A stretch of DNA of 64,000 bases from Oikopleura dioica. Lineage: Eukaryota > Animalia > Chordata. Shown in pieces: positions 2,872 to 32,264 of this stretch (the stretch's first letter is position 1; the number at the start of each line of letters is the position of its first letter). A program made the position numbers and the translations under genes. The stretch is from the NCBI GenBank assembly GCA_907165135.1, contig OU015566.1, positions 6,448,001 through 6,512,000 of the forward strand. The letters run 5' to 3'. Under the pieces are notes generated by a model. That model was not told the DNA's origin. It saw nothing but the letters and a program-made list of their open reading frames with translations, and searched no databases.

Positions 2872-5017
2872 CTGAAAAATGTAAAAGTAGACCTGTGGAA
2901 AGAAGTAGGCCGCGGACGTAAAAATCTATCACCACCATCGGAGCTTCGTATTGGATCATTCAAAAGCTCTTGGAAAAGGCTTTCTTATGGATAGATAAAA
3001 ACATGGCCCTAACTCCTAGTAGTTTTGACCTTATATTTATTTCAAATAACTCGAAACTGGGAGTTTTATATAAGTTATAGGTATCACTTTATAGTATTCA
3101 TATGACCCACATTTTCATTGCGTCGAAGATCTGGGCCAACTTGCGTCTAAATTAATCTATTTTTGATAATTCCAAACACGATGTGCCCCACAAGCATTTG
3201 ACCTTAATTTCGAGAGAATATGATTATGGCTAAGCAAGTGCCCGTGTTTTTGCAATAAAGAGAGAAACATTGATAGTTGTCTTTTTAAACGAGTCAATTG
3301 GCACTTGAAGATCTAGTTCAGATCCTGTCTAAATTCATCTATGGGAGATTTCAAATTTTGCGGACGGGTAAAAAAAATTTTTTTCGTGGTATTTGGTGAT
3401 TTAAGCCATTTGAAAGAAGTGATAAAAATGCCTTGTGAACGAGGCGAAAACAGGAACGAGCAGCTACAAAACGACCTCGAGATCAGGCGCTGAAAATAAG
3501 GCTCATCCCTAACCCGGAAATTTACGAAATTTAGATGTCGAAGTGTAAGGAGAAAAAAACCTAACCTAACGACCTAACCCTAACTGCATAATGCAGTTTC
3601 TTTCTAAAGATCAGTGAGTGCTTAAAATAGGTCACTGTATTGACCGAATCCCCCGGATCGAACTGTATTACAGTCGGAGTCCATAATAAGAGACTTTTTT
3701 TTCTCAAAATGTCGAAAATCAGCTGCAGTAAAAAATCAAATTTAAGGGGGAGGTGGTCGCTTTCTTGACTTTTTGAACAAGCATAATTAAAAAAATTTTA
3801 ATTTCTTTAATTCTAATTTCAGGGGATAATAAAGGGTTAAATGAAGAAGTCAACGTGGAAAAATTTCAAAAAAAATTTTCGAAGATTGAAAAAATTTTCG
3901 TCGAAGTGGGCGTTACTCTTAACAAAGGTTACGGCCAAATCCTTAAAAATTGTGAAAATCTAACTGTCAAAAAACATTGTTTAAACGAGTACTAAGAAGC
4001 AAACGTGGAGAAAAAATTGGGTAGTTATGGTGATTTAGGTTGAAAAAGCCAATTTTTGGAGTTTTGTTTTGTTAAAAATTGTCATTTATCATTCACTTTT
4101 CAATTTTTCACATTGTGAAATTAGTGAACATTAGTAAATTTTCGAAAAACCGTACTACGTACGTCCCAGAAAAGACAATATTGTTATTGCTTTTTAAAAA
4201 TAATAGAAAAAGATGAGTACTTTCGATGAGTTCGAAATAAATTTTGTTCCAAACAAGCATTTTTTGATTATCGAAATTTGTGTCTATCTGGTAGAGCGCT
4301 ATGTTGCCCTCGCAAATTCTAGTTGAAGTAAAAACATGCTATGCTCTTTATAAACTCGGGCAAGACCAATTAATTATCAAAAATCCGAGCTCGAGAATGA
4401 AGCTTCTGAATTGTATTTTAGCTCAAATAGCTAGCGCCGGCTACTTCCAGCAGTACGCTTCGCTGACTGCCGAAGAACGAGAGAGTCGACGAGTCATTTG
4501 CGATGCAAAGATCGACGAGACTCAAGCTGCCTTTCCTATCGAGAACGGATCGTGGGCTTGTCCAGGCTATGGACAAACCAGATCCAAGGTCCGATGCCAT
4601 CCAACTTGCGGCCAAGGCTTCCTTCCTGACTGGACAGAGAAGTCGATTTCAAAGCCGAAAAAAGATGCCGCCCGATTTATGGCTCGATGCGGGGACCCGG
4701 CTACGATCGTCAGAAAGTAAGTTTTCGATTTCAGAATCAATTTATATTTTTTAATTAAGAAATCTCCCGATCGGAATGGAGCTGAAATGTTCCGCCAAGC
4801 CTGCTCATCCATGCATTGCCAGAGCTGCGACGATTGCTATCTCGGACGGCAGACTAGAGCTTGCCAACGTGATCAACAAGAAACGAGCGAGCTACCAGGT
4901 TGTCTGCGAAGACGGAAGCGTCAGTGGTCGAGTTCACTGCTTCCAAGGAGTCTTCAACAATCCCAAATGGAACAGAGACGCATGGAAGAGCTCTTGTGTG
5001 GGAAAGACAACCACCGT
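1..5017. repeat. Near-identical segmental duplication of 26517-31516
   Basis: Base-by-base match until ...ACAACCACCGT (5017 vs 31516). The differences I saw are homopolymer lengths; the offset drifts from 26516 to 26499. Confidence 0.95.
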
Positions 5018-7899: not shown

Positions 7900-9086
7900 T
7901 CTTGAACGGAATCAAGTTCCGACGACAGGGAAAAGAGCCCAAGCCCGATTCTTTGGAGCGATTCAGAAAGGTGACCCGATCTGACAACGGTCACCTGACA
8001 TGCATGGACGCCGACAAAATCCACAAAAAGCACAAGGGCGGAAACTCTCACCAAGAAGAAGAGCCCGCTCCCGGCATGCAAATGGACGTCGGTTTGGATG
8101 TCGAGCCGCTCCAGGAAATCATCTACCCGCGATACAATGGGCCCGACGCTCCCTTCCCAGATGCTCACATGGGAATCTTTTCTGAAGAAGTCGAGGAAGA
8201 GGAAGAGCAAGAAGTTACTCCACGACGAAATCCAATCTCGGAATTCAATCTGTCTTCTGTTGATCCAGTCAGTGGGGGTGTTGTTTCGACGGAATTTGAA
8301 GAGCCAGAAGAAGGTAATAATTAATTTTATGATTTTCTTATAAGGAACATACGTTCTGCTGGATTGGATAACAGCTGGTATGGGTCTTATTTAAATTCCA
8401 TGAATCTAACAATCGATAAATTCATAAAGACACAAGTTGCATTATTATTCTGGTGTTTCATTTCTTCATTTTTCTTTCTAGATGAAGCCACAATGGTCCA
8501 ACTCGTCGGAGAAATCCCAGAAGAACAACTCGTTCCCGCCAACTACGAAGAAGAAAGCTTGAGCCGAGAGGAGGTAAAAAATTTGAGCTAAATAAGTACT
8601 AAATAAAAATTAAAATTTTGATGTTTATGCAAAACTAACTCCTTCCTCATCAACTTATCTAGATCCGCCTCATCCGCCTCCGAAAGAAGTTTTTCGAGAT
8701 GAAAAACGTCAAGATCGGCTGCTGCAACGGACAGGCTTACAATTCGCAGAAGCGATGCTGCTGCCGACGAGTTTCGTTTGATATGGACAAGAAATTCTGC
8801 TGCGCCATCAACGTACTTTTCAAAAAATGCCTTTTCAAAATTACTAAAATTTTTAAGGGTTGCGAAAGCTTCAAGATCATGAACAGAGGCAGCATTCAGG
8901 ACTACAACGATTGTCTTTCTCTTGATGGTACGTTTTCAACGCAGTGATTTATCGATGCCTACACCCTTAATCCTCTTTTTGCGCCATTTTATCAACCATC
9001 TTTCAGGTCTCGTCGTGCAGGAATACGGTTACCAAGGTCAACGAGGACAGCCCAAGATCTTCGGAAACGACCGAAGCCGAAATTAA
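7900..9086 (+). CDS. Acidic protein with a C-terminal galaxin-like di-cysteine region (copy A); start not located
   Basis: Phase-consistent GT-AG exons 7900-8313, 8482-8573, 8663-8812, 8858-8927 and 9007-9086. Motif GCCNGQAYNSQKRCCC...KFCC resembles galaxin-type repeats. Confidence 0.6.
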
Positions 9087-9842
9087 AACCCTTCCACCGA
9101 GCAGTATCCGGAAATGGACCACAACCAGGGCGTAAGAGGTGAAAATCAGTCGCAGTACAAAATTGACCCCTTGACTTGTTTTCCTTGAAGTCCTGTTTCG
9201 CGTCTCCTTTTCCGTAGTTTTATATTTTGCGCTTTCAAAAAAGACTTCTTCAATTTTCAAACAAAATCTCGCCGATTTTTTTTTATCTTTTATGCCACAT
9301 TTTTTTTTTGTCTTTTTTTTTGTAAATTTGTTGTTTTAATTTTTAACTCATCGTCGCGGTCGACAAAATTTCGACCATCCACGATCATCACAAAATAAAA
9401 CACGCGAGTACTATTTAAAAAAAAGAAAACCAACAACCCTGAATTTCCCAATCCCCCAAAAAACTACTTTTACTTTTTGATATAAGTTTTTCTTGTGTAA
9501 ATATCGCGCCACTAAGAACATGAATCAAACATGGCAGAACGCACGTCTGTACAGAAGACCACAAGATGGTAGCAGCCGACAAAAAATAACGAAGAAAAAA
9601 AATGAAGAAAAAACTCATCTTCCACAAAAAACAGCTGCCGCTTTATTTCAATAAATTTCCTGTTTATACCTAAAAAGTTGCTTTCTATATTTTTTTTTGC
9701 ATTCTTATTTTGAAACTTGTCCCTTTCGTATCATCGCTGAAGAAAATAGGAAGCAATAGTAAGCGACAAAAATAAAATTGACTTCCGCTTCCATCCGCAT
9801 ATAATCAAGGCTTCTGAGGGAGAGCAATACAGTGAGAAAGAA

Positions 9843-10140
9843 ATGAGTGCAATTAATGATTTTTACGACAAGCTCCGCCCTGATCAAGTGACCAAATTCC
9901 GATCAATTTTGGACGATCTGAGAGGGGCCTACGACAACCTTGATTCTGCCCAGAAAGAGTTCTTCGAGTCGAAATACTCAGACGGTTCTGCTGCTGATTG
10001 CCCGGTGGTGAAGCTTATTGGTAATGCTGGAGCCTTCGATAAAGGTAAATTTTTATTTCGAATTAAAAATGTTTCTAAAAATTTAAATTCTCCCAGAAGC
10101 TACAACTGATGGTCAAAGCCATTTTTGTGTTCTTTTATAA
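9843..10140 (+). CDS. Small hypothetical protein (about 81 aa, two exons)
   Basis: Exon 9843-10044, GT-AG intron 10045-10096, exon 10097-10140 ending TAA; homologous copy at 20991. Confidence 0.55.
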
Positions 10141-10320
10141 AAGAAAAATTGTATCTTGAAAGAAAATATGCAATAAAATGAGCAAAATAAGACTTCAAGA
10201 AAATCAAACCGTTTTTTTTTTGCATGCTAAGTGTATTGAGAAAAGCAAAAGAAGTATCGCCTAAATAAGTGACAATTTGTGTAACGTGTTTTCGTGAAGA
10301 TCGTGTTCCTATTCCAAAGC

Positions 10321-12925
10321 TCAAGAATTTTGAAGATTGTCCATTGTATCGAATATCCAGTCAACATAATTGGAGACTTTAGCGTAAATTCCTGGAAAGT
10401 TCGGAGCAGCGCAGCCGAAACCCCAAGAAACAACACCGTAAACAACGGGTTTTCCAAAAGCTTCGCAGACCAAGGGTCCTCCAGAGTCGCCCTGGCAGGA
10501 ATCCTTCCCTCCGTCAGTTTGTCCATCGCCATCAAAATCTGGGATTCCAGCGCAAAACTGCGTTTCCCAAGTTGTTGGCTCGAAACTTATCATATTCGTT
10601 GCCTCACAGTACTCGTTAGAAAATGTGTAAACGCCGACTTCATTCAAAAGATGCGATGGCTCGTTACCAGCCCCATAACCTGCAACCTTGCAGTAAGATC
10701 CGTCGGCAACATGGTCTGCTGGAAGACATGCTGGGGATATCTTCGATGCGCATGTTTCTGGGCCCTCAGGGCCGTACTGATTGATGAGCGACTGCTTGAC
10801 ATTGGGAATTTTCAGAAGACAGATGTCATGAGGAGTTCCAGTCTCGTCAGTACTGTTGAAATCAAAACGATCGTAATCTTCGTGAATCTTGAAGTTTTGC
10901 AATTCAAGGTCCAAACTGCAAGGTTCAACCCGGTCGATGACTGAGACTCCTAAAAGCACAAGGGCATCATCTATATTTGTACCGAAACAACAGTGCGCAG
11001 CAGTCAGTACAAAATCGTGAGAGCCATCTTCAAACATTGTGATCAATGTCCCTCCGCAGGAGAAATCAAAGTTCGCGTAATAAGGATGCGCATCGATCGG
11101 CACATCTGTTCCGCCGACGATTTTTGTAAGAGGCTCGCTCTCGATTGGTTCAAGAGGAGTTTCACAAGTCATGTTTTTCCAAGATGGCTGCTCGAAAGTC
11201 GCATTTGGGAAGATTCCAGGACCAGTGGGAAGCGGAGAAGAGTCAGTTGTCGACGTTTCGGTTGGTTCTGTCACAGGAGGTGGAGTGAGAACAAAGCTCT
11301 CCATTTCGTTCGCGTCAACAAAACTGACACTGATTAAATCGTCAACCTCAGCGCAAAGGCCCCAATTGTAGTCAAGCACGCCTTTGAGAACAGGATAGTC
11401 ATCGACGAGGCAGATGAGCCCTCCGCCAGTATCACCAAGGCAAGTCTTTGCTGGGTCATTTTCGTCGATTGATTTGAATTCTCCATCCAAATAGATTAGA
11501 ACCGCATCACGGAGAACCGTCGCTTGCTCGGGCACGAACTCAATGTAGTCACCAAGGCCAGCTATATAGCAGCTTGTTCCACTAAAAATTATTAAGACAA
11601 AAATTCAACCCAAGATTTAACTTACTCTTCCAACTCCACATCTGATAAGCAAGCTGGCTCAAAACACGATCCGCCAGCACAAGAATCGGGTGCGTTGTCA
11701 ATCAGATTCGGAACCCTGACCATGCATTGTCTGGTTTCAGATAGAATTCCATTTCGATACTCGATGGGATTGATTATGTATTCATCGTTGTCGGGGTATT
11801 CCAAGTCATAAGCGCCAATATGGATGTTGAATCGGGACATATCAAAGTAGCAGCACCACGAGTCTGTCACAAGCCAATCGTCAGAACCGTCCTCGTATTT
11901 TGTCAAAATTGTCAAGCCGCAGTTTTCGGTCTCATCAAAGCCCGTCTTCTCGCTCCAAGCAAACCAGGGGTATCTTCCCTTTTTCGTTTCTTGTCCACCA
12001 GCGATTTTCGAAGAACTTCCAGGGCTTGAACAAGTTTTCGTCTTCGGCATGGATAGGGGTGGAAACTCGAAAGTTTCCTCCCAATCGATCGGCTCTTTGT
12101 AGAGTGAATGGAGCATACATTTGGTGTAGTCTTCGTTGTTGGTTTCTTCATCGATTTGCTAAAAATTGAATTAAGGCTTGGCTGGTTTTGAAAGAGCTTG
12201 ATTCTCACCTTGGTCATGAAATAATAATTAGCTTTTGTCACGCATTCTTCCACTGCTTCAAAGTCGTGCTGATCTTCATTGAAATTCACCTCCATCAGCA
12301 AAGAGTCACCATTCTCATTCTTCAGTTCTCGTTGTTGATATCGTCGAGAAAACTGGAGAAAAACACTTTCTTTCGTCCCATGTCTTTCTTTTTTCGGCGT
12401 TTGATGTCCGATGAACTGACTTTCGTAGACATCAAGTTGGAGGTCAGAAAATGAAACATGTAGATCTTGCAAGTGGAGATGATGGTCAGTGACGAACTCG
12501 CCGCAGTTGGAAATTTTGAAGCGAACCATTCCGACGTAATCCTCCTCTGCTGGCAGCCTTGTTTTCCCTTTGAAGTCGACTGAGTAGAGAACAGAACCAT
12601 ATTTTCGACTGATCACCCTGGTCTTTGTCTTTGTCGCTTGCTTAGATTGGATTTAAGCATGTCCGACAAAAATTTTCTTGTAAATTATCAGACGTTAATT
12701 CCTTTCCTTAAAACCGTTGCACTTCTTTTTGCATTTGACTGACGATCCGAAAGCTGCTCCATTGTCCGGGTCACAGCCTTGCTTGAGCTTTGGAAACTCG
12801 CAGTAGCTGACTGGCTGGGATGATTCTGTTGGGCTGAATGAAGTTGTTGATGTAGCAGACGTGGAGATAATAGTTGTCGAGTGAAACGCACTCGTAGTCA
12901 AAAAGAAGGAAGAAAGTAACTTCAT
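10321..12925 (-). CDS. Secreted tandem-domain S1 protease: inactive trypsin-like domain followed by an active trypsin domain (copy A)
   Basis: Exons 12925-~12700, ~12640-12209, 12158-11626 and 11581-10321. Domain 2 has IVGG, LTAAHC, HDICLL, KDSCQGDSGGP. Domain 1 has IAGG, LVTDSWC, GDTGGG. Confidence 0.9.
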
Positions 12926-13361
12926 CTCTTCTCGAGCGACTCTCGTTCTGACCGCACCCGAACTTTTGCCGTCGTTTTTAAGTGCTTCATGGCTTTGACG
13001 AAGTTTAGCAGAAGAAAGAAAATCTTTAATGAACTATTCTGCGGTTTACGGAGATTGATCTTGATATTGTATCCATCGCATTGTATTTGTTTCATGATGT
13101 GCGCATGAAAGAACGATGACCTTTGGGAGGTCTTTCTTTTTTTGCTGACCTGTCATCTTGAAATTCTTACAAATAGATGAACCAACAACTTTTACGGAGT
13201 GCAACATGTTTTAATTAAACGCTTGTACGGTCAAAACAGTAAAGAAAAGAATGCTTAGTACGCTTTGATTTTTCGGGGAAAAAAAGAAAGAGGGAAAGTT
13301 AGGTCAAACATTGGTGAAGGAAACAGGGATTTTTCTAAGGAAATGACATGTCGATTTTGGC

Positions 13362-13499
13362 TTAGATGTCAGTATCGTGCCAACCGTTGAGTTGTTGGTC
13401 GGGAGTTTGGTGGCCAGAGCGCGACATTTGAGTCATCGCGGTCGGAGATCGGTGCTCAGAGGGGAGGAGGGATGTTCCTTCGTCGTGGTAGGTCGTCAC
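13362..13499 (-). pseudogene. ctnnb1: Orphan copy of the beta-catenin terminal exon
   Basis: After a CAG acceptor it encodes VTTYH...[11 protein letters not shown], like the beta-catenin end WFDTDL*. No armadillo exons lie immediately upstream in copy A. Confidence 0.75.
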
Positions 13500-13649
13500 C
13501 TGAACTTGTTTTAAATGCTTGTATAATTTTAAAGAATGGAGGGAGAGGTTAGTTAGAAATCAAAGGAGGAAAGAAAGGAGTTAGAGAAAGGAGGATAAAT
13601 CTGGATCCAATCAAGCCAATAATCAAATCGCTCAAATCTTGTTGTTATT

Positions 13650-14240
13650 GAACCTCGGATTTCTGAGCCGCAATAGAAATCATTTCAATATCCGCTTCAG
13701 TGAAAACTGTGATGTGCTTTGAATTGTTTGTGGTACTCATTTTTCGTTGAAAACAAGGAAGAAAACCAGGAAGAATTGCAGAATTCTCTTTCAACAAAAT
13801 TGCCTATTCAAATTCTCATCAATTTCCATTTTCGCTTGTTTTTCTGGCGGCGAGCTTCTAGGCTTGGGAACTGCCGAGGATCTTCCGGAAGCACGAGCGG
13901 AAGCATGAGTCGATGCTCGGAGAGTTTGAGGGAGGGAAGCCTTGCTCATTCGGCTGGGAGACTCGCGCACGAACGAGGTGTTTTCAATTCCACTTTCTGG
14001 TTTTGGAGTCACTTGAGCTACTTGTTGGTTCAACAATATGACAATAAATCTTTTGAGCTCCTTTTCTTCATTTGAACCTTCCCTGAAACCTTGGGCTTGC
14101 TTTTCGCAGCTTCGAGTCTGGCAATTTCTTCATCAATATTCCTCTCTGCCTCCTTTTGCTTCTCCACAGCAATTTCATATTCTCTCATTTGCTTTTCATA
14201 TTCTTCTCCAGCGGCCTTGACGGCTTTTTCTGCAGCTTTC
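13650..14240 (-). CDS. Conserved coding segments (coiled-coil-like and Ser/Pro/Arg-rich), copy A; gene structure unresolved
   Basis: Differences from 25040-25632 are mostly synonymous in frames [18 protein letters not shown]..., [13 protein letters not shown]... and [13 protein letters not shown]... Confidence 0.55.
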
Positions 14241-14388
14241 TTTCCAAATTCATTCAAAAATCAGTGCCAAAATATAAATCTGTGATACGTGCACTTGTTT
14301 TTCCGTGTTTTTTTTTTATGAGAAAATTAAAATTTAATCGAAAATTAAAATTTAATCGATAATCGAAATTCTGTAGAGAGCTTTCTCA

Positions 14389-19827: not shown

Positions 19828-20267
19828 CCCTCTCCGAAGCCAAGAACAATTTTCTTCGATGCAAACTGGCGTCAAATTCCAACGCCAATGAAAAACGTCA
19901 AGATCGGCTGCTGCAACGGACAGGCTTACAATTCGCAGAAGCGATGCTGCTGCCGACGAGTTTCGTTTGATATGGACAAGAAATTCTGCTGCGCCATCAA
20001 CGTACTTTTCAAAAATACCTTTGCAAAGTTACTAAAATGGTGATTTCTAGGGTTGCGAAAGCTTCAAGATCATGAATAGAGGCAGCATTCAGGACTACAA
20101 CGATTGTCTTTCTCTTGATGGTAAGACAAATTATCGATACCTACACCCTTAATCCTTCTTTTCGCTCTTTTATCAACCAATTTTCAGGTCTCGTCGTGCA
20201 GGAATACGGCTACCAAGGTCAACGAGGACAGCCCAAGATCTTCGGAAACGACCGAAGCCGAAACTAA
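19828..20267 (+). CDS. Galaxin-like Cys-rich gene, copy B (different upstream sequence from copy A)
   Basis: Same last three exons as copy A. After the acceptor at 19827, PSPKPRTIFFDANWRQIPTP is in frame with MKNVKIGCC. Confidence 0.5.
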
Positions 20268-20990
20268 ACCCCTTCCACCGAGCAGTATCCGGAAAGTGGC
20301 AACAATCAGGGCGTAAGAGGTTAAAATCAGTCGCAGTACAAACAAAGCCCCCTTGACTAAATTTCCTTGAAGTCCTGTTTCGCGTCTCCTTTTCCGTAGT
20401 TTTATATTTTGCGCTTTCAAAAAAGACTTCTTCAATTTTCAAACGAAATCTCGCCGATTTTTTTTTATCTTTTTTGCCACATTTTTTTTGTCTTTTTTTT
20501 GTAAATTTTTTGTGTTAATTTTTAACTCATCGTCGCGGTCGACAAAATTTCGACCATCCGCGATCATCACAAAACGAAACACGCGAGTACTATTTAAAAA
20601 AAGAAAACCATCAACCCTGAATTTCCCAATCCCCAAAAAACTACTTTCACTTTTTGATATAATTTTTCTTGTGTAAATATCGCGCCACTAAGAACATGAA
20701 TCAAACATGGCAGAACGCACGTCTGTACAGAAGACCACAAGATGGTAGCAGCCGACAAAAAATAACGAAGAAAAAAATGAAGAAAAAACTCATCTTCCAC
20801 AAAAAACAGCTGCCGCTTTATTTCAATAAATTTCCTGTTTATACCTAAAAATTGATTTTTATAATTTTTTGCATCAAAATTTTGAAACTCGTCTTGAAGA
20901 AAATAGGAATCTACAAAAAATAACATTTACTTCCGCTTTCATCCCCATATAATCAAGGCTTCTGAGGGAGAGCAATACAGTGAGAAAGAA

Positions 20991-21285
20991 ATGAGTGCAA
21001 TTAATGATTTTTACGACAAGCTCCGCCCTGATCAAGTGAACAAGTTCCAATAAATTTTGGAGGATCTGAGAGGGGCCTACGACAACCTTGATCCTGCCGA
21101 GAAAGAGTTCTTCGAGTCGAAATACTCAGACGGTTCTGCTGGTGATTGCCCGGTGGTGAGGCTTATTGGTAATGCTGAAGCCTTCGATACAGGTAAATTT
21201 TTATTTCGAATTAAAAATGTTTCTAAAAATTTAAATTCTCCCAGAAGCAACAACTGATGGTCAAAGCCATTTTTGTATTCTTTTA
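20991..21285 (+). pseudogene. Copy B of the small hypothetical gene with a premature stop
   Basis: TCA in copy A is TAA at 21051-21053, after MSAINDFYDKLRPDQVNKFQ. Confidence 0.65.
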
Positions 21286-21466
21286 TAAAAGAAAAATTGT
21301 ATCTTGAAAGAAAATATGCAATAAAATGATCAAAATAAGACTTCAAGAAAATCAAACCGTTTTTTTTACATGCTAAGTGTATTGAGAAAAGCAAAAGAAG
21401 TATCGCCTAAATAAGTGACAATTTGTGTAAGGTGTTTTCGTGAAGATCGTGTTCAATTTCCAAAGC

Positions 21467-24318
21467 TCAAGAATTTTGAAGATTCTCCATTGTATCGAAT
21501 ATCCAGTCCACATAATTCGAAACTTTAGCGTAAATTCCTGGAAAATTCGGAGCAGCGCAGCCGAAACCCCAAGATACAACACCGTAAACAACGGGTTTTC
21601 CAAAAGCTTCGCAGACCAAGGGTCCTCCAGAGTCGCCCTGGCAGGAGTCTTTACCGCCGTCAGTTTGTCCATCGCCATCAAAATCGGGTATTCCAGCGCA
21701 AAACTGTGTCTCCCAGGTTGTTGGCTCAAAACTTATCATATTCGTCGCTTCACAGTACTCGTTAGAAAATGTGTAGACGCCGACTTCATTCAAAAGATGA
21801 CTTGGCTCGTTACCAACCCCATAACCTGCTACCTTGCAGTAAGATCCGTCGGCAACATGGTCTGCTGGAAGACATGCAGGGGATATCTTCGATGCGCAAG
21901 TCTCTGGGCCGTCAGGCCCGTACTGATTGATAAGCGACTCCTTGACATTGGGAATTTTCAGAAGACAGATGTCATGAGGAGTTCCAGTCTCGTCAGTACT
22001 GTTGAAATCAAAATGATCGTAATTTTCGTGAATTTTGAAGTCTTGCAACTCAAGGTCCAAACTGCAAGGTTCAACACGGTCGATGACTGAGACTCCTAGA
22101 AGCACAAGGGCATCATCTATATTTGTACCGAAACAACAGTGTGCAGCAGTCAGCACAAAATCGTGAGAGCCGTCTTCAAACATTGTGATCAATGTTCCTC
22201 CGCAGGAGAAATCAAAGTTCGCGTAATAAGGATGCGCATCGATCGGCACATCTGTTCCGCCGATGATTTTTGTAAGAGGTTCGCTCTCGATTGGTTCAAG
22301 AGGAGTTTCACAAGTCATGTTTTTCCAAGATGGCTGCTCGAAAGTCGCATTTGGGAAGATTCCAGGACCAGTGGGAAGCGGAGAAGAGTCAGTTGTCGAC
22401 GTTTCGGTTGGTTCTGTCACAGGAGGTGGAGTGAGAACAAAGCTCTCCATTTCGTTCGCGTCCACAAAGCTTACACTGAAGAAATCGTTTAGCTCAGCGC
22501 AACTGCTCCCAGTGTAGTCAAGAACGCCTTTGAGAACGGGATAGTCATCGACAAGGCAGATGAGCCCTCCGCCAGTATCACCAAGACAAGTTTTTGCTGG
22601 GTCATTTTCGTCGATCGATTTGAATTCTCCATCCAAAAAGATTAAAACGGCATCACGAAGGACCGTTGCTTGCTCGGGCATGGACTCATCGTAGTCACCG
22701 AGGCCAGCTATATAACAGCTTGTTCCACTAAAAATTGTTAAAGCCAGGTAATTGGGCCAAGATTTAACGCCGAAACGCATATCGACCCATTTCCGGGTAA
22801 GGCGCAGAAATATGGTTTGAAAGATGGTCATTTTCTAGTGTTAAAACAACACATGAGAGATATTTCAATATTGTAGTCCGGCGTCTGAAGATCATATTTA
22901 TAGTAAAATATGGGTTGATGTAAGCAAGAAAACGGGTCTACGGGCTCTCAACCAAAAATGGGTCGATATGCGTTCCGGGAAAATTCTATTTCATGCGTTC
23001 CAGCGTTAACTCACTCTTCCAACTCCACATCTGATAAGCAAGCTGGCTCAAAACACGATCCGCCAGCACACGAATCTGGGGCGTTGTCAATCAAATTTGG
23101 AACCCTAACCATGCACTGTCTGGTTTCAGATAGAATTCCCCATCGATACTCGATGGGATTGATTATGTATTCATCGTTGTCGGGATATTCCAAATCATGA
23201 GCGCCAATATGAATGTTGAATCGGGACACACCAAAGAAGCAGCACCACGAGTCTGTCACAAGCCAGTCGTCAGAACCGTCCTCGTATTTTGTCAAAATAG
23301 TCAGGCCGCAGTTTTCAGACTCATCAAAGCCCGTCTTCTCGCTCCAAGCAAACCAAGGGTATCTTCCTTTTTTCGTTTCTTGGCCACCAGCGATTTTCGA
23401 AGAGCTGCCAGGGCTTGAGCATGTTTTCGTCTTTGGCATGGATAGGGGTGGAAGCTCGAAAGTTTGCTCCCAATCGATCGGCTCTTTGTAGAGTGAATGG
23501 AGCATGCATTTGGTGTAGTCTTCGTTGTTGGTTTCTTCATCGATTTGCTAAAAATTGAATTGAGGCTTGGCTGGTTTTGAAAGACAGAGCTTGATTCTCA
23601 CCTTGGTCATGAAATAGTAATTGGCTTTTGTTACGCATTCTTCCACTGCTTCAAAATCGTGCTGGTCCTCATCGAAATTCACCTCCATCAGCAAAGAGTC
23701 ACCATTCTCGTTTTTCAGTTCTCGTTGTTTATATCGTCGAGAAAACTGGAGAAAAACGCTTTCTTTCGACTCATGTCTTTCTTTTTTCGGCGCTTGATGT
23801 CCTATGAACTGATTTTCGTAGACATCAAGTTGGCGGTCAGAAAATGAGACATGTAGATCTTGCAAGTGAAGATGATGGTCAGTGACGAACTCGCCGCAGT
23901 TGGAGATTTTAAACCGAACCATTCCGACGTAATCTTCCTCTGCTGGCAGCCTTGTTTTTCCTTTGAAGTCGACCGAGTAGAGAACAGAACCATATTTTCG
24001 ACGGATTACCCTGGCCTTTGCTTTTGATGCTTGCTTAGATGGAATTTTGAGCGGATCGAAGAAAATTTTCTTCATAAATATCGAAAATTAATCCCTTTCC
24101 TTAAAACCATTGCACTTCTTTTTGCACTTTACTGACGATCCGAAAACTGCTCCATTGTCCGGGTCACAACCTTGCTTGAGTTTTGGAAACTCGCAATAGC
24201 TAACTGGCTGGGATGTTTCAGTTGGGCTGAATGAAGTTGTTGATGTAGCAGACGTGGAGATAAAAGTCGTCGAGTGAAACGCACTCGTAGTTAAAAAGAA
24301 GGAAGAAAGTAACTTCAT
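21467..24318 (-). CDS. Secreted tandem-domain S1 protease (inactive plus active trypsin domains), copy B
   Basis: Exons 24318-~24103, ~24072-23602, 23547-23015 and 22727-21467; intact H/D/S triad and Asp S1 pocket in domain 2. Confidence 0.9.
22768..23005. mobile_element. 238-bp TTAA-duplicating (piggyBac-like) MITE in a protease intron
   Basis: TTAA at 22764-22767 and 23006-23009; termini CGCCGAAACGCAT / ATGCGTTCCAGCG; subterminal 19-bp inverted repeat; copy A has a single TTAA (empty site) near 11617. Confidence 0.88.
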
Positions 24319-24754
24319 CTCTTCTCGAGCGACTCTCGTTCTGACCGCACCCGAACTTTTGCCGTCGTTTTTAAGTGCTTCATGGCTTTGACGAAGTTTA
24401 GCAGAAGAAAGAAAATCTTTAATGAACTATTCTGCGGTTTACGGAGATTGATCTTGATATTGTATCCATCGCATTGTATTTGTTTCATGATGTGCGCATG
24501 AAAGAACGATGACCTTTGGGAGGTCTTTCTTTTTTTGCTGACCTGTCATCTTGAAATTCTTACAAATAGATGAACCAACAACTTTTACGGAGTGCAACAT
24601 GTTTTAATTAAACGCTTGTACGGTCAAAACAGTAAAGAAAAGAATGCTTAGTACGCTTTGATTTTTCGGGGAAAAAAAGAAAGAGGGAAAGTTAGGTCAA
24701 ACATTGGTGAAGGAAACAGGGATTTTTCTAAAGAAGTGACATGTCGATTTCGGC

Positions 24755-27700
24755 TTAGATGTCAGTATCGTGCCAGCCGTTGAGTTGTTGGTCGGGAGTT
24801 TGGTGGCCAGAGCGCGACATTTGGGTCATCGCGGTTGGAGATCGGTGCTCAGAGGGGAGGAGGGATGTTCCTTCGTCGTGGTAGGTCGTCACCTGAAGTT
24901 GTTTTAAACGCTGGTACAATGTAAAAGAATGGAGGGAAAGGTTAGTTAGAAATCAAAGGAGGAAAGAAAGGAGTTAGAGAAAGGAGGATAAATCTGGATC
25001 CAATCAAGCCAATAATCAAATCGCTCAAATTGTTGAATCATTGAACCTCGGATTTCTGAGCAGCAATAGAAATCATTTCAATATCAGCTTCAGTGAAAAC
25101 TGTGATGTGCTTTGAATTGTTTGTGGTGCTCATTTTTCGTTGAAAACAAGGAAGAGAACCAGCTAGAATTGCTGAATTCTTTTTCAACAAAATTGCCTAT
25201 TTAGGTTCTCATCAATTTCCATCTTCGCTTGTTTTTCTGGCGGAGAGCTTCTAGGCTTGGGAACTGCTGATGATCTTCCGGAAGCACGAGCGGATGCATG
25301 AGTCGATGCTCGGAGAGTTTGAGGGAGGGAAGCTTTGCTCATTCGGCTGGGGGACTCGCGCACGAACGAGGTGTTTTCGATCCCACTTTCTGGTTTTGGA
25401 GTAACTTGAGCTATTTTTTGGTTCAGCAATTTGACCATAAATCTTTACATCCCTTTTTCTTCATTTGAACCGTCCCTGAAGCCTTAGGCTTGTTCTTCGC
25501 AGCTTCAAGTCTTGCAATTTCTTCATCAATATTTCTCTCTGCCTCTTTTTGCTTCTCCACAGCAATTTGATATTCTTTCATTTGCTTTTCATATTCTTCT
25601 CCAGCGGCTTTGACGGCTTTTTCTGCAGCTTTCTGTCCAAATTCATTCAAAAATCAGTGCCAAAATAAAAATTTGTGATCCGTGCTCTTGCTTTTCCGTG
25701 ATTTTTTTTAATGATCATTTTTGAACATGCCTGGGCGTCAACCATTCCGAAAATGGGACGTGTTGTGCGGAAAATAGCCTAGTGGAAGTGAAAAAGAAAG
25801 GAAAAGAAGAAGGAAGATACAAGAAGTAGGAGAAGGAAGATTGAAAGATTAATTTACCTCGTCGTTGTTGTAGTGATCGTCCAAATCCTCTGGTCGGAAG
25901 AGCGAGTTTGTCAGCTCCTGTGAAAGTTGTATCGTTATCACTTTGTTTTCATCCAATTTCGTTTTTACCTGGGAGAGTCGTTTACGGATATCGTGGGGCT
26001 TATCTTCAGACATTCGGTACATCGTGGCAGCGGCATAGGTGGCGACGCACTCGTTTGCAGAGTGAAGGAGGGGTTGGAGGATAACAGTGGCGTTTTGAGC
26101 TTCGATTTGGTCGGCAGCTTCCTTATCAGTTGCGAGTTCGCACAAAAGACCAGCTAGAAAATTTATTGTAAATTTGAAACTACGTTTTTGAAACATCTTA
26201 GAGAATGTCTTTCTTGAGAAAGCATATGATCTTACCTGCGCTTCGCTGCATATTCCCATTCGGAGAAGACAGGAATCGAACAACAGTTGGAATCACATTG
26301 GATTGTCGGATGAGCTGTCGATTCATTGGATCTCGCGCCAAGACGTGAAGTGCGCCAGTGGAACCTTCCGCTACATCTTCCGGGACAACTCCATCTTCGT
26401 CGTCATCTCGGTAGCCGCGGGACATCTCCCCGTCCGCTCGGAAAAGCAGCTCAATCAATTTCGGAATCGCTCCTGCGTCACGAAGATATTGCTGGTTTGC
26501 AGATCCGATGCCCAAGTTTCGGCAGAGGCCAATAACTGCCTTGACGAGTGGGTAGTGAGAGTCAGGGCCAAGGAGCTTCACGAGCGTTGGAATTCCATGT
26601 CGAACAGCTTCCTGTGCCGCCTTTGCTTGCTCATGTCGCGATGTCAAATGTCGCAGCGCGCAAATGGCCGGTTCGGTGATGTCATCCCGCTCGACAGCTT
26701 GGAGCATCGTTTGAACAAGCGCCTGGACACCGCCAAAGTGGCAAACGAGGGCTTTGTTTCTCGCATTGTTGCAGGTCAAGTTTGAGAGGATTCCAACGCA
26801 GCACATGACGATTCCGACATCGTTCGATTCCAAAAGCCGAACAGATCGCTGGAGCAAATCATCCAATCCTTCTTCCTTGGTCGCTTGATCAGAGAGATTT
26901 CGAAGCGTCCAGAGACAGTTCATAACGACTCTGTTGGATGGATTATCCAACATTGCGCCGAGAATGTTCATTCCATTGCACTCGATAATCACTTGTTTAT
27001 TCGAGGTCTCGACAGAAAGGACCTTCAACAAACGACACGTGGTAAATAGAAGCTTTTCATAATCGGCATTGTGCTGGAGAATGCGAATAAGCTGCTGGGT
27101 TCCGTGCTTTGAGACGATAATGAGCTTCGATTCTTGGTGCTGAAAGGAGAGCATTTCCAAGCAATCAGTTAAAAGAGCGAGCATTCGAAGTGGAGCATTG
27201 TCCTTTGAGAGCAAATCGACCATCTTTTGGACTCCACCAGCCAATCGGACGGCTCGTTTGGCGTCGTCTCCCTGGTGTTGGAGGATGTTGTGGAGTGTGG
27301 TGAGGGAGTAATGGACCACTTTTTCGACGGGCGAAGAGAGCATCTTGACAAGAGCGGGAATTCCACCGGATCGGAAAATCGACAAGAGACCCTTTTTCGA
27401 TCCAGAAATCGCTGTCAAAGTACCAGCCAAGGCCTTGACGGTTTCAGGGTCGTCGTTGGTCGTGAGGACCTTGACGATGGCGGGGATGAGATCGGGACTT
27501 TCAATGAGCGCATGTCGCGGGGCTTCTTTTTTCGCAAGTTGGAAAACGGTGCCAGCTGCTTGTCGAGCGACGCCGCGGTCAGGATCTTGCAACAGCTTTT
27601 TATTGGGTTGTCAATTTGAATTTGAAAGACGCAGAAAAAAGATGCAGCAAGTAGACTTTCAAAGTCGTAATTTATTAATGAACCCTTGCCTTAATTAGTT

Positions 27701-29386
27701 CCGGAATGGCAATGGCGGTTACATCGACATCATCCTTGTAGTGGATCAGCATGACAATGGCCTCCTTGAGCAGTTGGCTCGGCTGGGCAAGCTTTTGAAC
27801 ACAGGTGGCCTCTCCAGTTTCGTACTGAGTCGAAACAAAGCTCGATCCGTCGTCAAGAGTTTCGGGAAACATGGCAGCCCGGATCCGATCCGCTCGTGTT
27901 CTCACCATGTCTCTGTTTAGGTCAGAAACCTAAATTGGAAAATTTCAAAAAGGTCAAAATGGATATTTTTAAATCTGTGTGAAAATGGTCACGGGTGAGG
28001 GAACTCGTGCGCGGGGCTTCGAAAGATGAAACTAATTAACGGCAATTTGAGCTTGATTGATGGAGAATTTTGAATAAACGAAAGGGGGGAGATTGTTTTA
28101 GAGCGAAATAAAGACCATAATGTCCCGATAAATATCATTTTTATTTAGTTTTTTTATCAAAAAATGAATGAAAAACGTAATCTATCCTCCTTTACAGCAC
28201 GATGTGTACCGTCAATAATTTTTCTATTTAATAAATTAATTAAATCTCAATTCAAAAACAAACTTTTTGAAGAAGAAATATTGATTTACCTGTTCATTCG
28301 CATACTCATGTTGCCACTCTTCAAACACCTGTCCCATTGTTCTTCAATATTTACTGACAGCTTCTTCTGATTTCTCCTTCTGTAAATATACTTTCTATTT
28401 CGTAGCTAATTGAGCAAACTGAGGCTCCCTCTTTGAGCTTTTAGCGTGCGTGAATGGGGAGTAAGTGTCAAAACGCGCGGGAGCGAACCCAAAACTCGCT
28501 GTAGCTCTATCTATTGGCCAACTGTGGCTGCTATTGATCGCTCTGGGCAATGTTCGCCCGCTCAATGGGCCCGCGTAGTTTTGAATGATTCAACTCCCAA
28601 CTCGTGCATAATCATCCTTCTCGATTTTAAAAGAGGCTCTGATCAATTTTTATGTATTGGTCATCAGATCAAAGGATAATCATCCTTCTTGACATTAAAA
28701 ATAAGCTCTCATCAATTTTTGTTTACCGGGGAGGTTCTTTTATGATAATATTTTTTAGAAATTTATTTCTCGAGCATTATTTTAAAGTAGCGCTTTATTT
28801 TCATACGCAATAATCAATATCAACTTTCAAGGCGTCACTGAGGGTGATCCGTCTACGGCAAGCTTTGGAACGTCTTCATCGAAAAGTTGGAAAGAGGAGG
28901 CTTTAAGACAGGAGGTGGAGGAAGTTCTAGAGAGGGATCGCTCGTCTCTGGTGTATCTTCTATCGCTACGCTCTGTTGATCATCACCAAACTGGAATGGT
29001 TATGCATTTTCATACTGTAAGAGTGGTAAATTGCTCGTCAACTGCGGTCGGTATCGGAATCAAGGAAGAAAACAACTTTGTACAACTTTGTTGGTATATG
29101 TATCTAGGTATTGGTGTTTTATTTGAGCTTATTGCTCTTGACTCCTTGAGTGAAGAGTGAGCTGCATGCATAGAAAAGAAGCAGTACCGGTTGTTATCAG
29201 TTTGGTTAGGTAAGCGCTCACAGACAGAGTAGATGCAATGACTGACTGTGACGAGAGCTAACACTCACATATACTCTTCTTCCGACTCGTAGTCGGTGCT
29301 TCTCGATCTATTCATTTCAGAGGCGATTGTGGTTGCGGAGTAATCTGAGTTCGGAACAGAAACGTAGCTCAAACGATCGTCTTGAT
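24755..29386 (-). CDS. ctnnb1: Beta-catenin; short first coding exon not located
   Basis: Phase-consistent exons 29386-29269, 28379-28290, 27912-27690, 27595-26236, 26153-25969, 25917-25858 and 24892-24755. [18 protein letters not shown], armadillo repeats, TYAAA, KRLS, terminal GWHDTDI*. Confidence 0.95.
25040..25632 (-). CDS. Conserved coding segments inside the last beta-catenin intron (nested gene or alternative tail exons)
   Basis: Mostly synonymous divergence from copy A; K/E/A-rich helical segment; possible phase-0 donor TCCGAG/GTTCAA compatible with the terminal exon. Confidence 0.55.
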
Positions 29387-30897
29387 CTGAAAAATGTAAA
29401 AGTAGACCTGTGGAAAGAAGTAGGCCGCGGACGTAAAAATCTATCACCACCATCGGAGCTTCGTATTGGATCATTCAAAAGCTCTTGGAAAAGGCTTTCT
29501 TATGGATAGATAAAAACATGGCCCTAACTCCTAGTAGTTTTGACCTTATATTTATTTCAAATAACTCGAAACTGGGAGTTTTATATAAGTTATAGGTATC
29601 ACTTTATAGTATTCATATGACCCACATTTTCATTGCGTCGAAGATCTGGGCCAACTTGCGTCTAAATTAATCTATTTTTGATAATTCCAAACACGATGTG
29701 CCCCACAAGCATTTGACCTTAATTTCGAGAGAATATGATTATGGCTAAGCAAGTGCCCGTGTTTTTGCAATAAAGAGAGAAACATTGATAGTTGTCTTTT
29801 TAAACGAGTCAATTGGCACTTGAAGATCTAGTTCAGATCCTGTCTAAATTCATCTATGGGAGATTTCAAATTTTGCGGACGGGTAAAAAAAATTTTTTTC
29901 GTGGTATTTGGTGATTTAAGCCATTTGAAAGAAGTGATAAAAATGCCTTGTGAACGAGGCGAAAACAGGAACGAGCAGCTACAAAACGACCTCGAGATCA
30001 GGCGCTGAAAATAAGGCTCATCCCTAACCCGGAAATTTACGAAATTTAGATGTCGAAGTGTAAGGAGAAAAACCTAACCTAACGACCTAACCCTAACTGC
30101 ATAATGCAGTTTCTTTCTAAAGATCAGTGAGTGCTTAAAATAGGTCACTGTATTGACCGAATCCCCGGATCGAACTGTATTACAGTCGGAGTCCATAATA
30201 AGAGACTTTTTCTCAAAATGTCGAAAATCAGCTGCAGTAAAAATCAAATTTAAGGGGAGGTGGTCGCTTTCTTGACTTTTTGAACAAGCATAATTAAAAA
30301 ATTTTAATTTCTTTAATTCTAATTTCAGGGGATAATAAAGGGTTAAATGAAGAAGTCAACGTGGAAAAATTTCAAAAAATTTTCGAAGATTGAAAAAATT
30401 TTCGTCGAAGTGGGCGTTACTCTTAACAAAGGTTACGGCCAAATCCTTAAAAATTGTGAAAATCTAACTGTCAAAAACATTGTTTAAACGAGTACTAAGA
30501 AGCAAACGTGGAGAAAAATTGGGTAGTTATGGTGATTTAGGTTGAAAAAGCCAATTTTTGGAGTTTTGTTTTGTTAAAAATTGTCATTTATCATTCACTT
30601 TTCAATTTTTCACATTGTGAAATTAGTGAACATTAGTAAATTTTCGAAAAACCGTACTACGTACGTCCCAGAAAAGACAATATTGTTATTGCTTTTTAAA
30701 AATAATAGAAAAGATGAGTACTTTCGATGAGTTCGAAATAAATTTTGTTCCAAACAAGCATTTTTTGATTATCGAAATTTGTGTCTATCTGGTAGAGCGC
30801 TATGTTGCCCTCGCAAATTCTAGTTGAAGTAAAAACATGCTATGCTCTTTATAAACTCGGGCAAGACCAATTAATTATCAAAAATCCGAGCTCGAGA

Positions 30898-32264
30898 ATG
30901 AAGCTTCTGAATTGTATTTTAGCTCAAATAGCTAGCGCCGGCTACTTCCAGCAGTACGCTTCGCTGACTGCCGAAGAACGAGAGAGTCGACGAGTCATTT
31001 GCGATGCAAAGATCGACGAGACTCAAGCTGCCTTTCCTATCGAGAACGGATCGTGGGCTTGTCCAGGCTATGGACAAACCAGATCCAAGGTCCGATGCCA
31101 TCCAACTTGCGGCCAAGGCTTCCTTCCTGACTGGACAGAGAAGTCGATTTCAAAGCCGAAAAAGATGCCGCCCGATTTATGGCTCGATGCGGGGACCCGG
31201 CTACGATCGTCAGAAAGTAAGTTTTCGATTTCAGAATCAATTTATATTTTTAATTAAGAAATCTCCCGATCGGAATGGAGCTGAAATGTTCCGCCAAGCC
31301 TGCTCATCCATGCATTGCCAGAGCTGCGACGATTGCTATCTCGGACGGCAGACTAGAGCTTGCCAACGTGATCAACAAGAAACGAGCGAGCTACCAGGTT
31401 GTCTGCGAAGACGGAAGCGTCAGTGGTCGAGTTCACTGCTTCCAAGGAGTCTTCAACAATCCCAAATGGAACAGAGACGCATGGAAGAGCTCTTGTGTGG
31501 GAAAGACAACCACCGTCGCGCCATCCACTGAGCCACCGACGGAGCCACCAACGGAGCCCCCAACTGCGCCACCAACTGAGCCGCCAACTGAGCCGCCGAC
31601 GGAGCCACCGACGGAGCCAGCAACAACGCTTCCTGCCTGCCGCGACCCATGCCATGGGCTTGCCTCTTGTCAAACCTTCATCAATGGCTGCGAAATCGCA
31701 CCAAGCAGAAATAACCAGCTCGCAACTGTCTCTTCAGGAAGGGTTTCAATGTTTTGATATCCAAATTTTTTTTTCAAAATTTAAAACAATTGAAATCAAT
31801 TCTAAGCTTTTAACTACAAATTTTCGGCTGATGTCCTTTGCGATTTGTACGTGACCGGACACCAGGAGAATCTTATTCACGTCAATAGAGGAAACGCCTC
31901 TAGCGAAATCGGCGATCGTACGTTTTGTCTTTGGAAACGAATGAATCAAGACACTAAACTAAAATTTGCCGTTACTGACCCTGCCGACCTCTCGAAGTTT
32001 GACTACTCGGACGATTATGAGTGTGTTCCTGGCGAATGGACGACGATCTCTGTGGAAGTTCGCCAAGAAGAAGCAGACCCATCTACGCTTCGATTCACCA
32101 TGAAGATGGGAGACACCCAACTTCATTCCGGCACTTACGCTGCGACAGAGGAATTGAAGAGCTACGATCTCCAAGTTTTCGTTGGAAACCCCTGGGTAAA
32201 TTCCGCTACCGGCATGCTCGTCCGAAATTTCTACTACCAAACCTTCGAAGAAATCCCAGTTTAA
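30898..32264 (+). CDS. Secreted modular protein: sushi-like Cys modules, (TEPP)n linker, C-terminal ConA/LamG-like domain
   Basis: Exons 30898-31216, 31259-~31740 and 31807-32264. An A5 run near 31159 breaks the frame, while A6 in the copy at 4658 restores it. Confidence 0.7.
31527..31619 (+). repeat. 12-nt coding tandem repeat (TEPP)n
   Basis: About eight degenerate ACNGAGCCNCCN units. Confidence 0.9.

Follow-up and report, generated by a model that had tools for sequence, protein, structure and literature searches.

A decayed ZO-1-derived fragment lies upstream of a beta-catenin gene that starts past the phosphodegron in Oikopleura dioica

RESULTS

The frame at 29269–29386 derives from ZO-1

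Analysis of a 64,000-nt stretch of Oikopleura dioica DNA (hereafter, the window) revealed that a short open frame on the (−) strand (29269–29386), which an initial annotation had read as a beta-catenin exon with an altered phosphodegron, is a decayed, non-functional scrap copied from the ZO-1/TJP tight-junction gene and not an exon of beta-catenin. The neighboring beta-catenin gene is translated from an ATG at 28337, lacks the degron altogether, and is most likely the adhesion member of its family. We assign a probability of about 0.8 to this combined reading, which removes a false lead in that the seemingly mutated degron exon is a captured piece of ZO-1.

Several elements of the initial annotation proved accurate. 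The open frame is present as claimed, with translation running from 29384 to 29269, ttttcag preceding it, and gtgagt following it. The tract at 2754–2871 is indeed the same, as the two peptides are 100% identical and lie inside a 5-kb duplicate at 99.66%. The gapless count against human S29–S45 was also arithmetically right (5 of the 17 positions are identical), and at the register of the beta-TrCP motif D-S-G-x-x-S the peptide reads S-V-P-N-S-D. The assignment to beta-catenin fails, given the homology to ZO-1 and the lack of any transcript linking the frame to beta-catenin. Specifically, BLASTP of the peptide against residues 1–100 of Xenopus beta-catenin returned zero alignments even at E ≤ 100, beta-catenin chains were absent from its matches among PDB sequences, and we detected no homology to the beta-catenin N-terminus. 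The likeness to the degron region is a product of chance.

The best match of the peptide in the whole PDB was human ZO-1 (3shw_A, DDRLSYLSAPGSEYS; E = 0.19, weak when taken alone). In that chain, the end of the GUK domain is followed by DDRLSYLSAPGSEYS...SDYE, and this region of ZO-1 (TJP1), at residues ~397–424 of 3shw_A, displays a DDRLSY-S-P-S-YS motif whose order is shared with the peptide, indicating homology to the acidic motif found past the GUK domain. The peptide also matched P0135, a ZO-type fragment of another organism (E = 2e-11), the N-terminal part of which aligns with the end of the ZO-1 GUK domain. A large representative search found the motif in 15 short fragments and did not return a full-length named ZO-1, and a word search with the ZO-1 exon yielded three fragments only; the name ZO-1 came from the PDB search, not from the representative search.

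A six-frame search of the genome (G000) uncovered a third copy at C4:8796894–8797004, with 83% amino acid identity and within a longer open frame. This parent is a ZO-1/TJP gene (locus L010, G000:C4:8.797 Mb), and the source of the scrap is the acidic stretch just past its GUK domain. Pfam analysis of the open frames at L010 identified Guanylate_kin in an upstream exon and ZU5 in a downstream one, both with ZO-1 as their best PDB match, and the locus displays the GUK ... ZU5 architecture of ZO-1. Its exon preceding the motif ends in ...LVWVSEKVAAPEEDDENLDQ, which aligns with the end of the GUK domain of human ZO-1. Comparison of the window with L010 yielded three homology blocks with 84–86% nucleotide identity that total ~330 bp. 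Whereas the ZO-1 gene is intact at C4:8.797 Mb, the window copy is an isolated and interrupted fragment without PDZ, SH3, GUK, or ZU5 exons, and no complete ZO-1 gene is found in the window.

The ZO-1 scrap is decayed and lies in a mosaic of captured fragments

The first ZO-1-derived block (29271–29402, (−) strand) shows 84.7% nucleotide identity to L010 1481–1617 and 83% amino acid identity, and holds the annotated exon together with 16 nt from the acceptor region of the parent. An insertion of ~255 bp (29017–29270, (−) strand), which is 72% related to sequences at C5:0.92–0.93 Mb, splits the ZO-1-derived sequence at a point where the parent is continuous. Beyond it, blocks 2 and 3 (28936–29016 and 28833–28941, (−) strand) contain stops in all three frames and, compared with the parent, a 1-nt deletion near 28879. 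The window copy carries a frameshift and is missing the parent segment L010 1698–1804.

On its other side, the scrap adjoins a dispersed repeat of ~115 bp (29418–29535), which provides the 5′ part of a 69-aa frame at 29265–29474. This repeat is found on all large contigs, often in close inverted pairs (a MITE-like or hairpin element). Other pieces of the neighborhood match unrelated loci, and, in view of these matches and those to the dispersed repeat, captured fragments make the region a mosaic. A second, identical ZO-1-derived mosaic (2318–2887, (−) strand), which includes 2754–2871, sits ahead of the second beta-catenin copy. In a wild relative, a metagenome contig (L023) sharing 93% identity with the window over 900 bp, the stop codon TAG replaces GAG ahead of the putative donor. 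Most probably, the ZO-1 scrap joined, as a copy, a mosaic built of gene fragments and dispersed repeats ~0.3–0.9 kb ahead of the site at which beta-catenin transcription begins, was duplicated along with the gene, and is not spliced into beta-catenin mRNA.

The surroundings show a complex segmental duplication (window 1–5017 with 26517–31516, and 8699–14321 with 19888–25714), with two near-identical beta-catenin 5′ halves (99.66%) and four nearby copies of the last beta-catenin exon, two of them in the window (13365–13556 and 24758–24928) and two to the left of it. The window also holds a 454-aa open frame (21467–22831, (−) strand), with a 93% copy near 10300–11595, in which we recognized by eye the trypsin-like serine protease motifs IIGG…, TAAHC, and GDSGGP.

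RNA reads over the scrap originate from the parental ZO-1 gene

The RNA came from a lineage ~85–90% identical (X5–X7) and from metatranscriptome contigs only (X1), and the read likeness threshold was lowered to 82% to accommodate the divergent lineage. The junction of beta-catenin exons 1 and 2 was confirmed by RNA, and a near-identical X1 contig joins 28387–28288 to 27927 in exon 2; its 5′UTR, too, is unbroken and contains an in-frame stop. Reads leaving exon 1 upstream represent the continuous 5′UTR of the relative. Reads were also found over the annotated exon and the block at 28857–29013, with apparent joints between the two; the loose ends of reads on the scrap match L010 at 94–100%, and loose ends of 30 nt found no match in the window by BLAST. 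Their source is the ZO-1 parent. The joints 28924/29013 to 29274/29275 were rejected as splicing, since they are ZO-1 mRNA reads aligned across the 255-bp insertion, and the apparent intron arises because the parent is continuous where the window has that insertion.

We found no joint from beta-catenin exon 1 to 29269/29275 among the X1 and X5–X7 reads and no transcript joining 29269–29386 to beta-catenin among seven transcript contigs and the RNA reads, which are shallow for the exact lineage. The scrap could conceivably serve as a rare alternative 5′ exon; an AG at 28343–28342 would permit an in-frame join. A direct splice from 29269 to the cag at 27913 was rejected, as the annotated proteins place the first exon between these points and the acceptor at 27930/27929. 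Separately, an X1 contig aligned at window ~29960–30000 runs on into sequence with ACTCATCCCATTTT, which we take to resemble the way the Oikopleura spliced leader begins, in an orientation unfit for a simple trans-spliced 5′ end.

Beta-catenin translation starts at 28337

The beta-catenin gene lies on the (−) strand. Exon 1 (28290–28499) consists of a 5′UTR continuous with the genome and a coding part (28337–28290), with an in-frame TGA (28344–28346) three codons upstream of the ATG at 28337. Exon 2 (27690–27929) ends in PELIK and encodes the alpha-catenin-binding region with the equivalent of Y142, exon 3 (26236–27595) contributes 453 codons and most of the armadillo repeats, and exon 4 (25969–26153) encodes the last armadillo repeat and helix C with the equivalents of Y654 and S675. 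Exon 5 (25858–25917) is followed by the last exon (24755–24892), which ends in ...GWHDTDI and a stop, a C-terminal ending of the PDZ type.

A word search returned two of the annotated proteins of this genome (P0001 and P0002) together with close relatives (P0003, P0004, and P0005). P0001–P0004 begin with MGQVFEEWQ or MSGVFEEWQ, the former being the start of P0001, P0002, and an Oikopleura relative in NCBI/UniRef (P0138), while P0005, an open frame reported by a gene caller, differs and begins with MTDLNNDLVRTR. The P0002 model (792 aa) merges beta-catenin with exons of a neighboring gene. Seven transcript contigs (L001–L007), five of them from a relative with 98% protein identity and two from another with 83%, have 5′UTRs that are colinear with the genome directly upstream of the ATG, and each contains an in-frame stop upstream of the ATG. 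One transcript contig opens with an apparent template-switch adaptor that, if it is such, marks the true 5′ end ~58 nt before the ATG. In a distant appendicularian, represented by a genomic contig (L024) with 73% identity, the protein starts with MSQVFEQWQ, a TGA lies nine codons upstream, and a divergent gene is ~540 bp away.

The window protein lacks the degron region and keeps its binding surfaces

When aligned to beta-catenins ranging from cnidarians to vertebrates and Ciona, all of which contain DSGIxSGxxT..S, the window proteins begin at human Q61. By its sequence, the window beta-catenin thus lacks the whole S33/S37/T41/S45 region (~60 N-terminal residues) instead of carrying a mutated one, and the degron is missing because the protein starts late, at the Q61 equivalent. 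The proposal that the degron was replaced by S-V-P-N-S-D with the T41/S45 equivalents kept is accordingly wrong, as coding starts beyond these positions. The finding named in advance as refuting that proposal, a cDNA with another N-terminal exon bearing DSGxxS, was obtained in part: the transcripts show another first coding exon, but that exon is also without DSGxxS. No DSGxxS-like motif was found upstream of the start in any frame of 2.8 kb. The N-terminal CK1/GSK3 cassette and the DSGxxS degron are absent from the window gene and present in a paralogue (L027; see below). Presumably, the human-numbered ubiquitin acceptors K19 and K49 are also gone.

The broader claim, that a beta-catenin encoded here is without the beta-TrCP phosphodegron and yet has intact binding surfaces, is borne out by sequence. 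All nine residues named in its support (Y142, D162, D164, K312, K345, W383, K435, Y654, and S675) are kept in P0001 compared with Xenopus beta-catenin, which is assumed to share human numbering at these positions and to which the window protein shows 56% identity over 632 aa. Arm Pfam families were recorded for P0001, and the gene (24755–28499) encodes both an armadillo core with the K312/K435 charged buttons and an alpha-catenin-binding region. Among the residues kept are the TCF contacts K312, K345, W383, and K435 and the BCL9 contacts D162/D164. The product from the ATG at 28337 keeps the alpha-catenin-binding region, all armadillo repeats, and the ...DTDI end, and the repeats retain the contact residues for cadherin, TCF, and BCL9.

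A paralogue retains a canonical degron, and destruction machinery appears to be present

The genome contains at least four beta-catenin-like loci. Compared with vertebrate beta-catenin, the window gene displays 56% identity versus 38–50% for the paralogues. Two of the loci, L013 (G000:C4:4300984–4304964, (+) strand) and L026 (G000:C5:7297000–7303000, (−) strand), are divergent beta-catenin-like sequences (24–43% identity) that both keep K312 and K435. L013 (C4:4.30 Mb) has a late start, MTDYDPEKIAKRLGRIEAIFFPDQ, and is without a degron.

Another paralogue, L027 (G000:C5:9701000–9706500, (+) strand; C5:9.70 Mb), has a canonical degron, DSGIHSG-ATSQTPS, spread over two exons. Exon 1 (~1444–1706 of the locus) ends in ...GAWQRGGWDSGIHS-G at a GT donor, and exon 2, from 1811, opens with ATSQTPSIVSG past an AG acceptor. 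Read by eye across the junction, the sequence aligns in register with S33, S37, and S45 and has serine at position 41, and exon 1 is conserved up to the donor in 11 related metagenome or transcriptome sequences. L027 also has a Q/H-rich N-terminus and a P/G/Q-rich C-terminal open frame. The degron came to light when the paralogue loci were scanned with a regular expression; a genome-wide profile search for it returned nothing useful, a false negative that missed the perfect DSGIHSG in L027, and negatives of this first-look profile filter on short motifs are untrustworthy.

An Axin-like gene (L021, G000:C4:7110833–7113895, (+) strand) contains an RGS-looking open frame followed by Axin_b-cat_bind (31 bits, over the cut-off) and DIX (32 bits). 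A Beta-TrCP_D domain match (34.9 bits) was found at L020 (G000:C4:8295347–8298457, (−) strand), and a beta-TrCP-type F-box gene is therefore present. At L028 (G000:C1:10918433–10921489, (−) strand), open frames encode 20-residue repeats of the APC type (…QDTPLMFSRHSPASASSIES…), which score 24.6 bits with APC_r, over the cut-off; the locus is possibly a divergent APC. The profiles for TCF CTNNB1_binding and APC SAMP gave no usable match, which does not speak for their absence. Neither Axin nor APC was found by KAAS, an automatic KEGG-orthologue annotation (Marti-Solans et al. 2021, PMC8220140). Judged by these domain matches, our data suggest that Axin-like and APC-like genes are present but divergent and were missed by KAAS, which would alter the reading of canonical Wnt loss in this gene-poor chordate.

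DISCUSSION

Other readings of the upstream frame

The idea that 29269–29386 is a real beta-catenin exon and a homologue of the human exon-3 region, in which DSGxxS mutated to SVPNSD while the T41/S45 equivalents persisted, draws on an open frame with AG and GT flanks, on S-Y, T-T, and S residues that match human S29-Y30, T41-T42, and S45, on an acidic EEE run that comes next as it does in the human protein, and on the formal possibility of an in-frame join to the AG 5 nt before the ATG. We consider it hardly credible, as both the peptide and its acceptor were copied from ZO-1, BLASTP detects no resemblance to the N-terminus of beta-catenin, all transcripts show an unbroken 5′UTR with an in-frame stop, a stop codon falls within the "exon" in one relative, and the distant appendicularian has the same ATG-QVFE start with no space for such an exon. 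It also appears very improbable that the scrap functions by itself as a small gene or a regulatory exon, for example, by encoding a micro-protein or by giving rise to a non-coding upstream transcript with control over beta-catenin. The 69-aa frame at 29265–29474 is ATG-initiated, and the mosaic is kept at 93% identity in a wild relative as well as in both tandem copies; yet that level of identity is the one seen in the surrounding non-coding DNA, the 5′ part of the frame is dispersed repeat, a stop shortens the frame in the relative, and no reads are assignable to the window copy instead of the ZO-1 parent.

Adhesion or signaling

Two maternal beta-catenins have been described in Oikopleura dioica, with beta-catenin1 acting in adhesion and beta-catenin2 in endoderm formation and Wnt signaling (Omotezako et al. 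2017, PMC5345011). Knock-down of one gene led to looser cell adhesion, while knock-down of the other abolished endoderm and muscle; the N-terminus, GSK3 sites, and degron are unmentioned in that report (PMC5345011), and we found no description of the degron status of Oikopleura beta-catenins in the literature. The window gene belongs to the same family in the same species complex, in which the present analysis counts at least four beta-catenin-like loci.

We infer that the window protein would escape marking by CK1/GSK3 for SCF-beta-TrCP and that, of the duplicated family, it is most likely the adhesion member, stable and bound to junctions, while Wnt-regulated turnover would fall to the C5:9.70 Mb paralogue with the canonical degron. 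When compared with adhesion-type beta-catenins (planarian beta-cat2 and HMP-2), its sequence has likewise lost the GSK3 sites and kept alpha-catenin and cadherin binding. Specialization for adhesion, one of two options offered by the initial annotation, thus gains support from the degron-bearing L027 and from the published split, although the role itself is only inferred. The conserved TCF contact residues argue against complete segregation of the two roles, and the window gene could still signal.

A different assignment would make the window gene the signaling beta-catenin (the published beta-catenin2), a degron-less co-activator controlled without beta-TrCP, for example, by localization, translation, or Axin sequestration, with the paralogue employed otherwise. 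The C-terminal region is intact, as are the residues that contact TCF and BCL9, the window gene is by far the best-conserved member of the family (56% versus 38–50%), and, as PMC5345011 gives no sequence detail, it may carry either published name. Against this stand the canonical degron of L027, which is conserved in appendicularian sequences, and the Axin, beta-TrCP, and APC-like parts, which together make L027 most simply the Wnt-regulated member. In addition, the window gene resembles adhesion paralogues (PMC5643146, planarian beta-cat2) in retaining both the region that binds alpha-catenin and a C-terminus of the PDZ type. On balance, we regard the signaling assignment as unlikely. A more far-reaching version, in which the slow-evolving, duplicated beta-catenin is constitutively degron-free and still signals via TCF/BCL9 without beta-TrCP control while the fast-evolving degron paralogue was re-purposed, strikes us as doubtful; if true, it would describe a chordate whose main beta-catenin has escaped the destruction complex.

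Comparison with other beta-catenins

The vertebrate beta-catenins that are N-terminally deleted or mutated in exon 3 are stabilized, oncogenic forms. Like the window protein, they have lost the S33/S37/T41/S45 cassette while the armadillo core is intact. They differ in that theirs is a somatic lesion, whereas the truncation in the window gene is a wild-type, evolutionarily conserved start.

The adhesion-type reading of the window gene finds its closest counterpart in planarians, in which Smed-beta-catenin-2 acts in adhesion and beta-catenin-1 in signaling (Chai et al. 2010, as summarized in PMC5643146), and GSK3 sites are found only in the signaling paralogue (PMC5643146). As in the planarian pair, one Oikopleura paralogue has N-terminal GSK3 sites and the other does not, and the planarian adhesion paralogue, like the window gene, has an alpha-catenin-binding motif, a platform for cadherin, and a PDZ-type ending at its C-terminus. 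Surfaces for Wnt components have, in addition, been lost from the planarian adhesion paralogue, which binds neither TCF nor beta-TrCP; the window gene, in contrast, keeps K312, K345, W383, K435, and D162/D164, so that segregation looks incomplete, and, unlike the planarian adhesion copy, it is slow-evolving and tandemly duplicated. Because a beta-catenin split is already known in planarians, nematodes, and Oikopleura dioica, the surprise is modest. What the present comparison would add is a reason, at the level of sequence, why the Oikopleura paralogues are split in function as published, in that one paralogue starts past the degron and another keeps the textbook degron.
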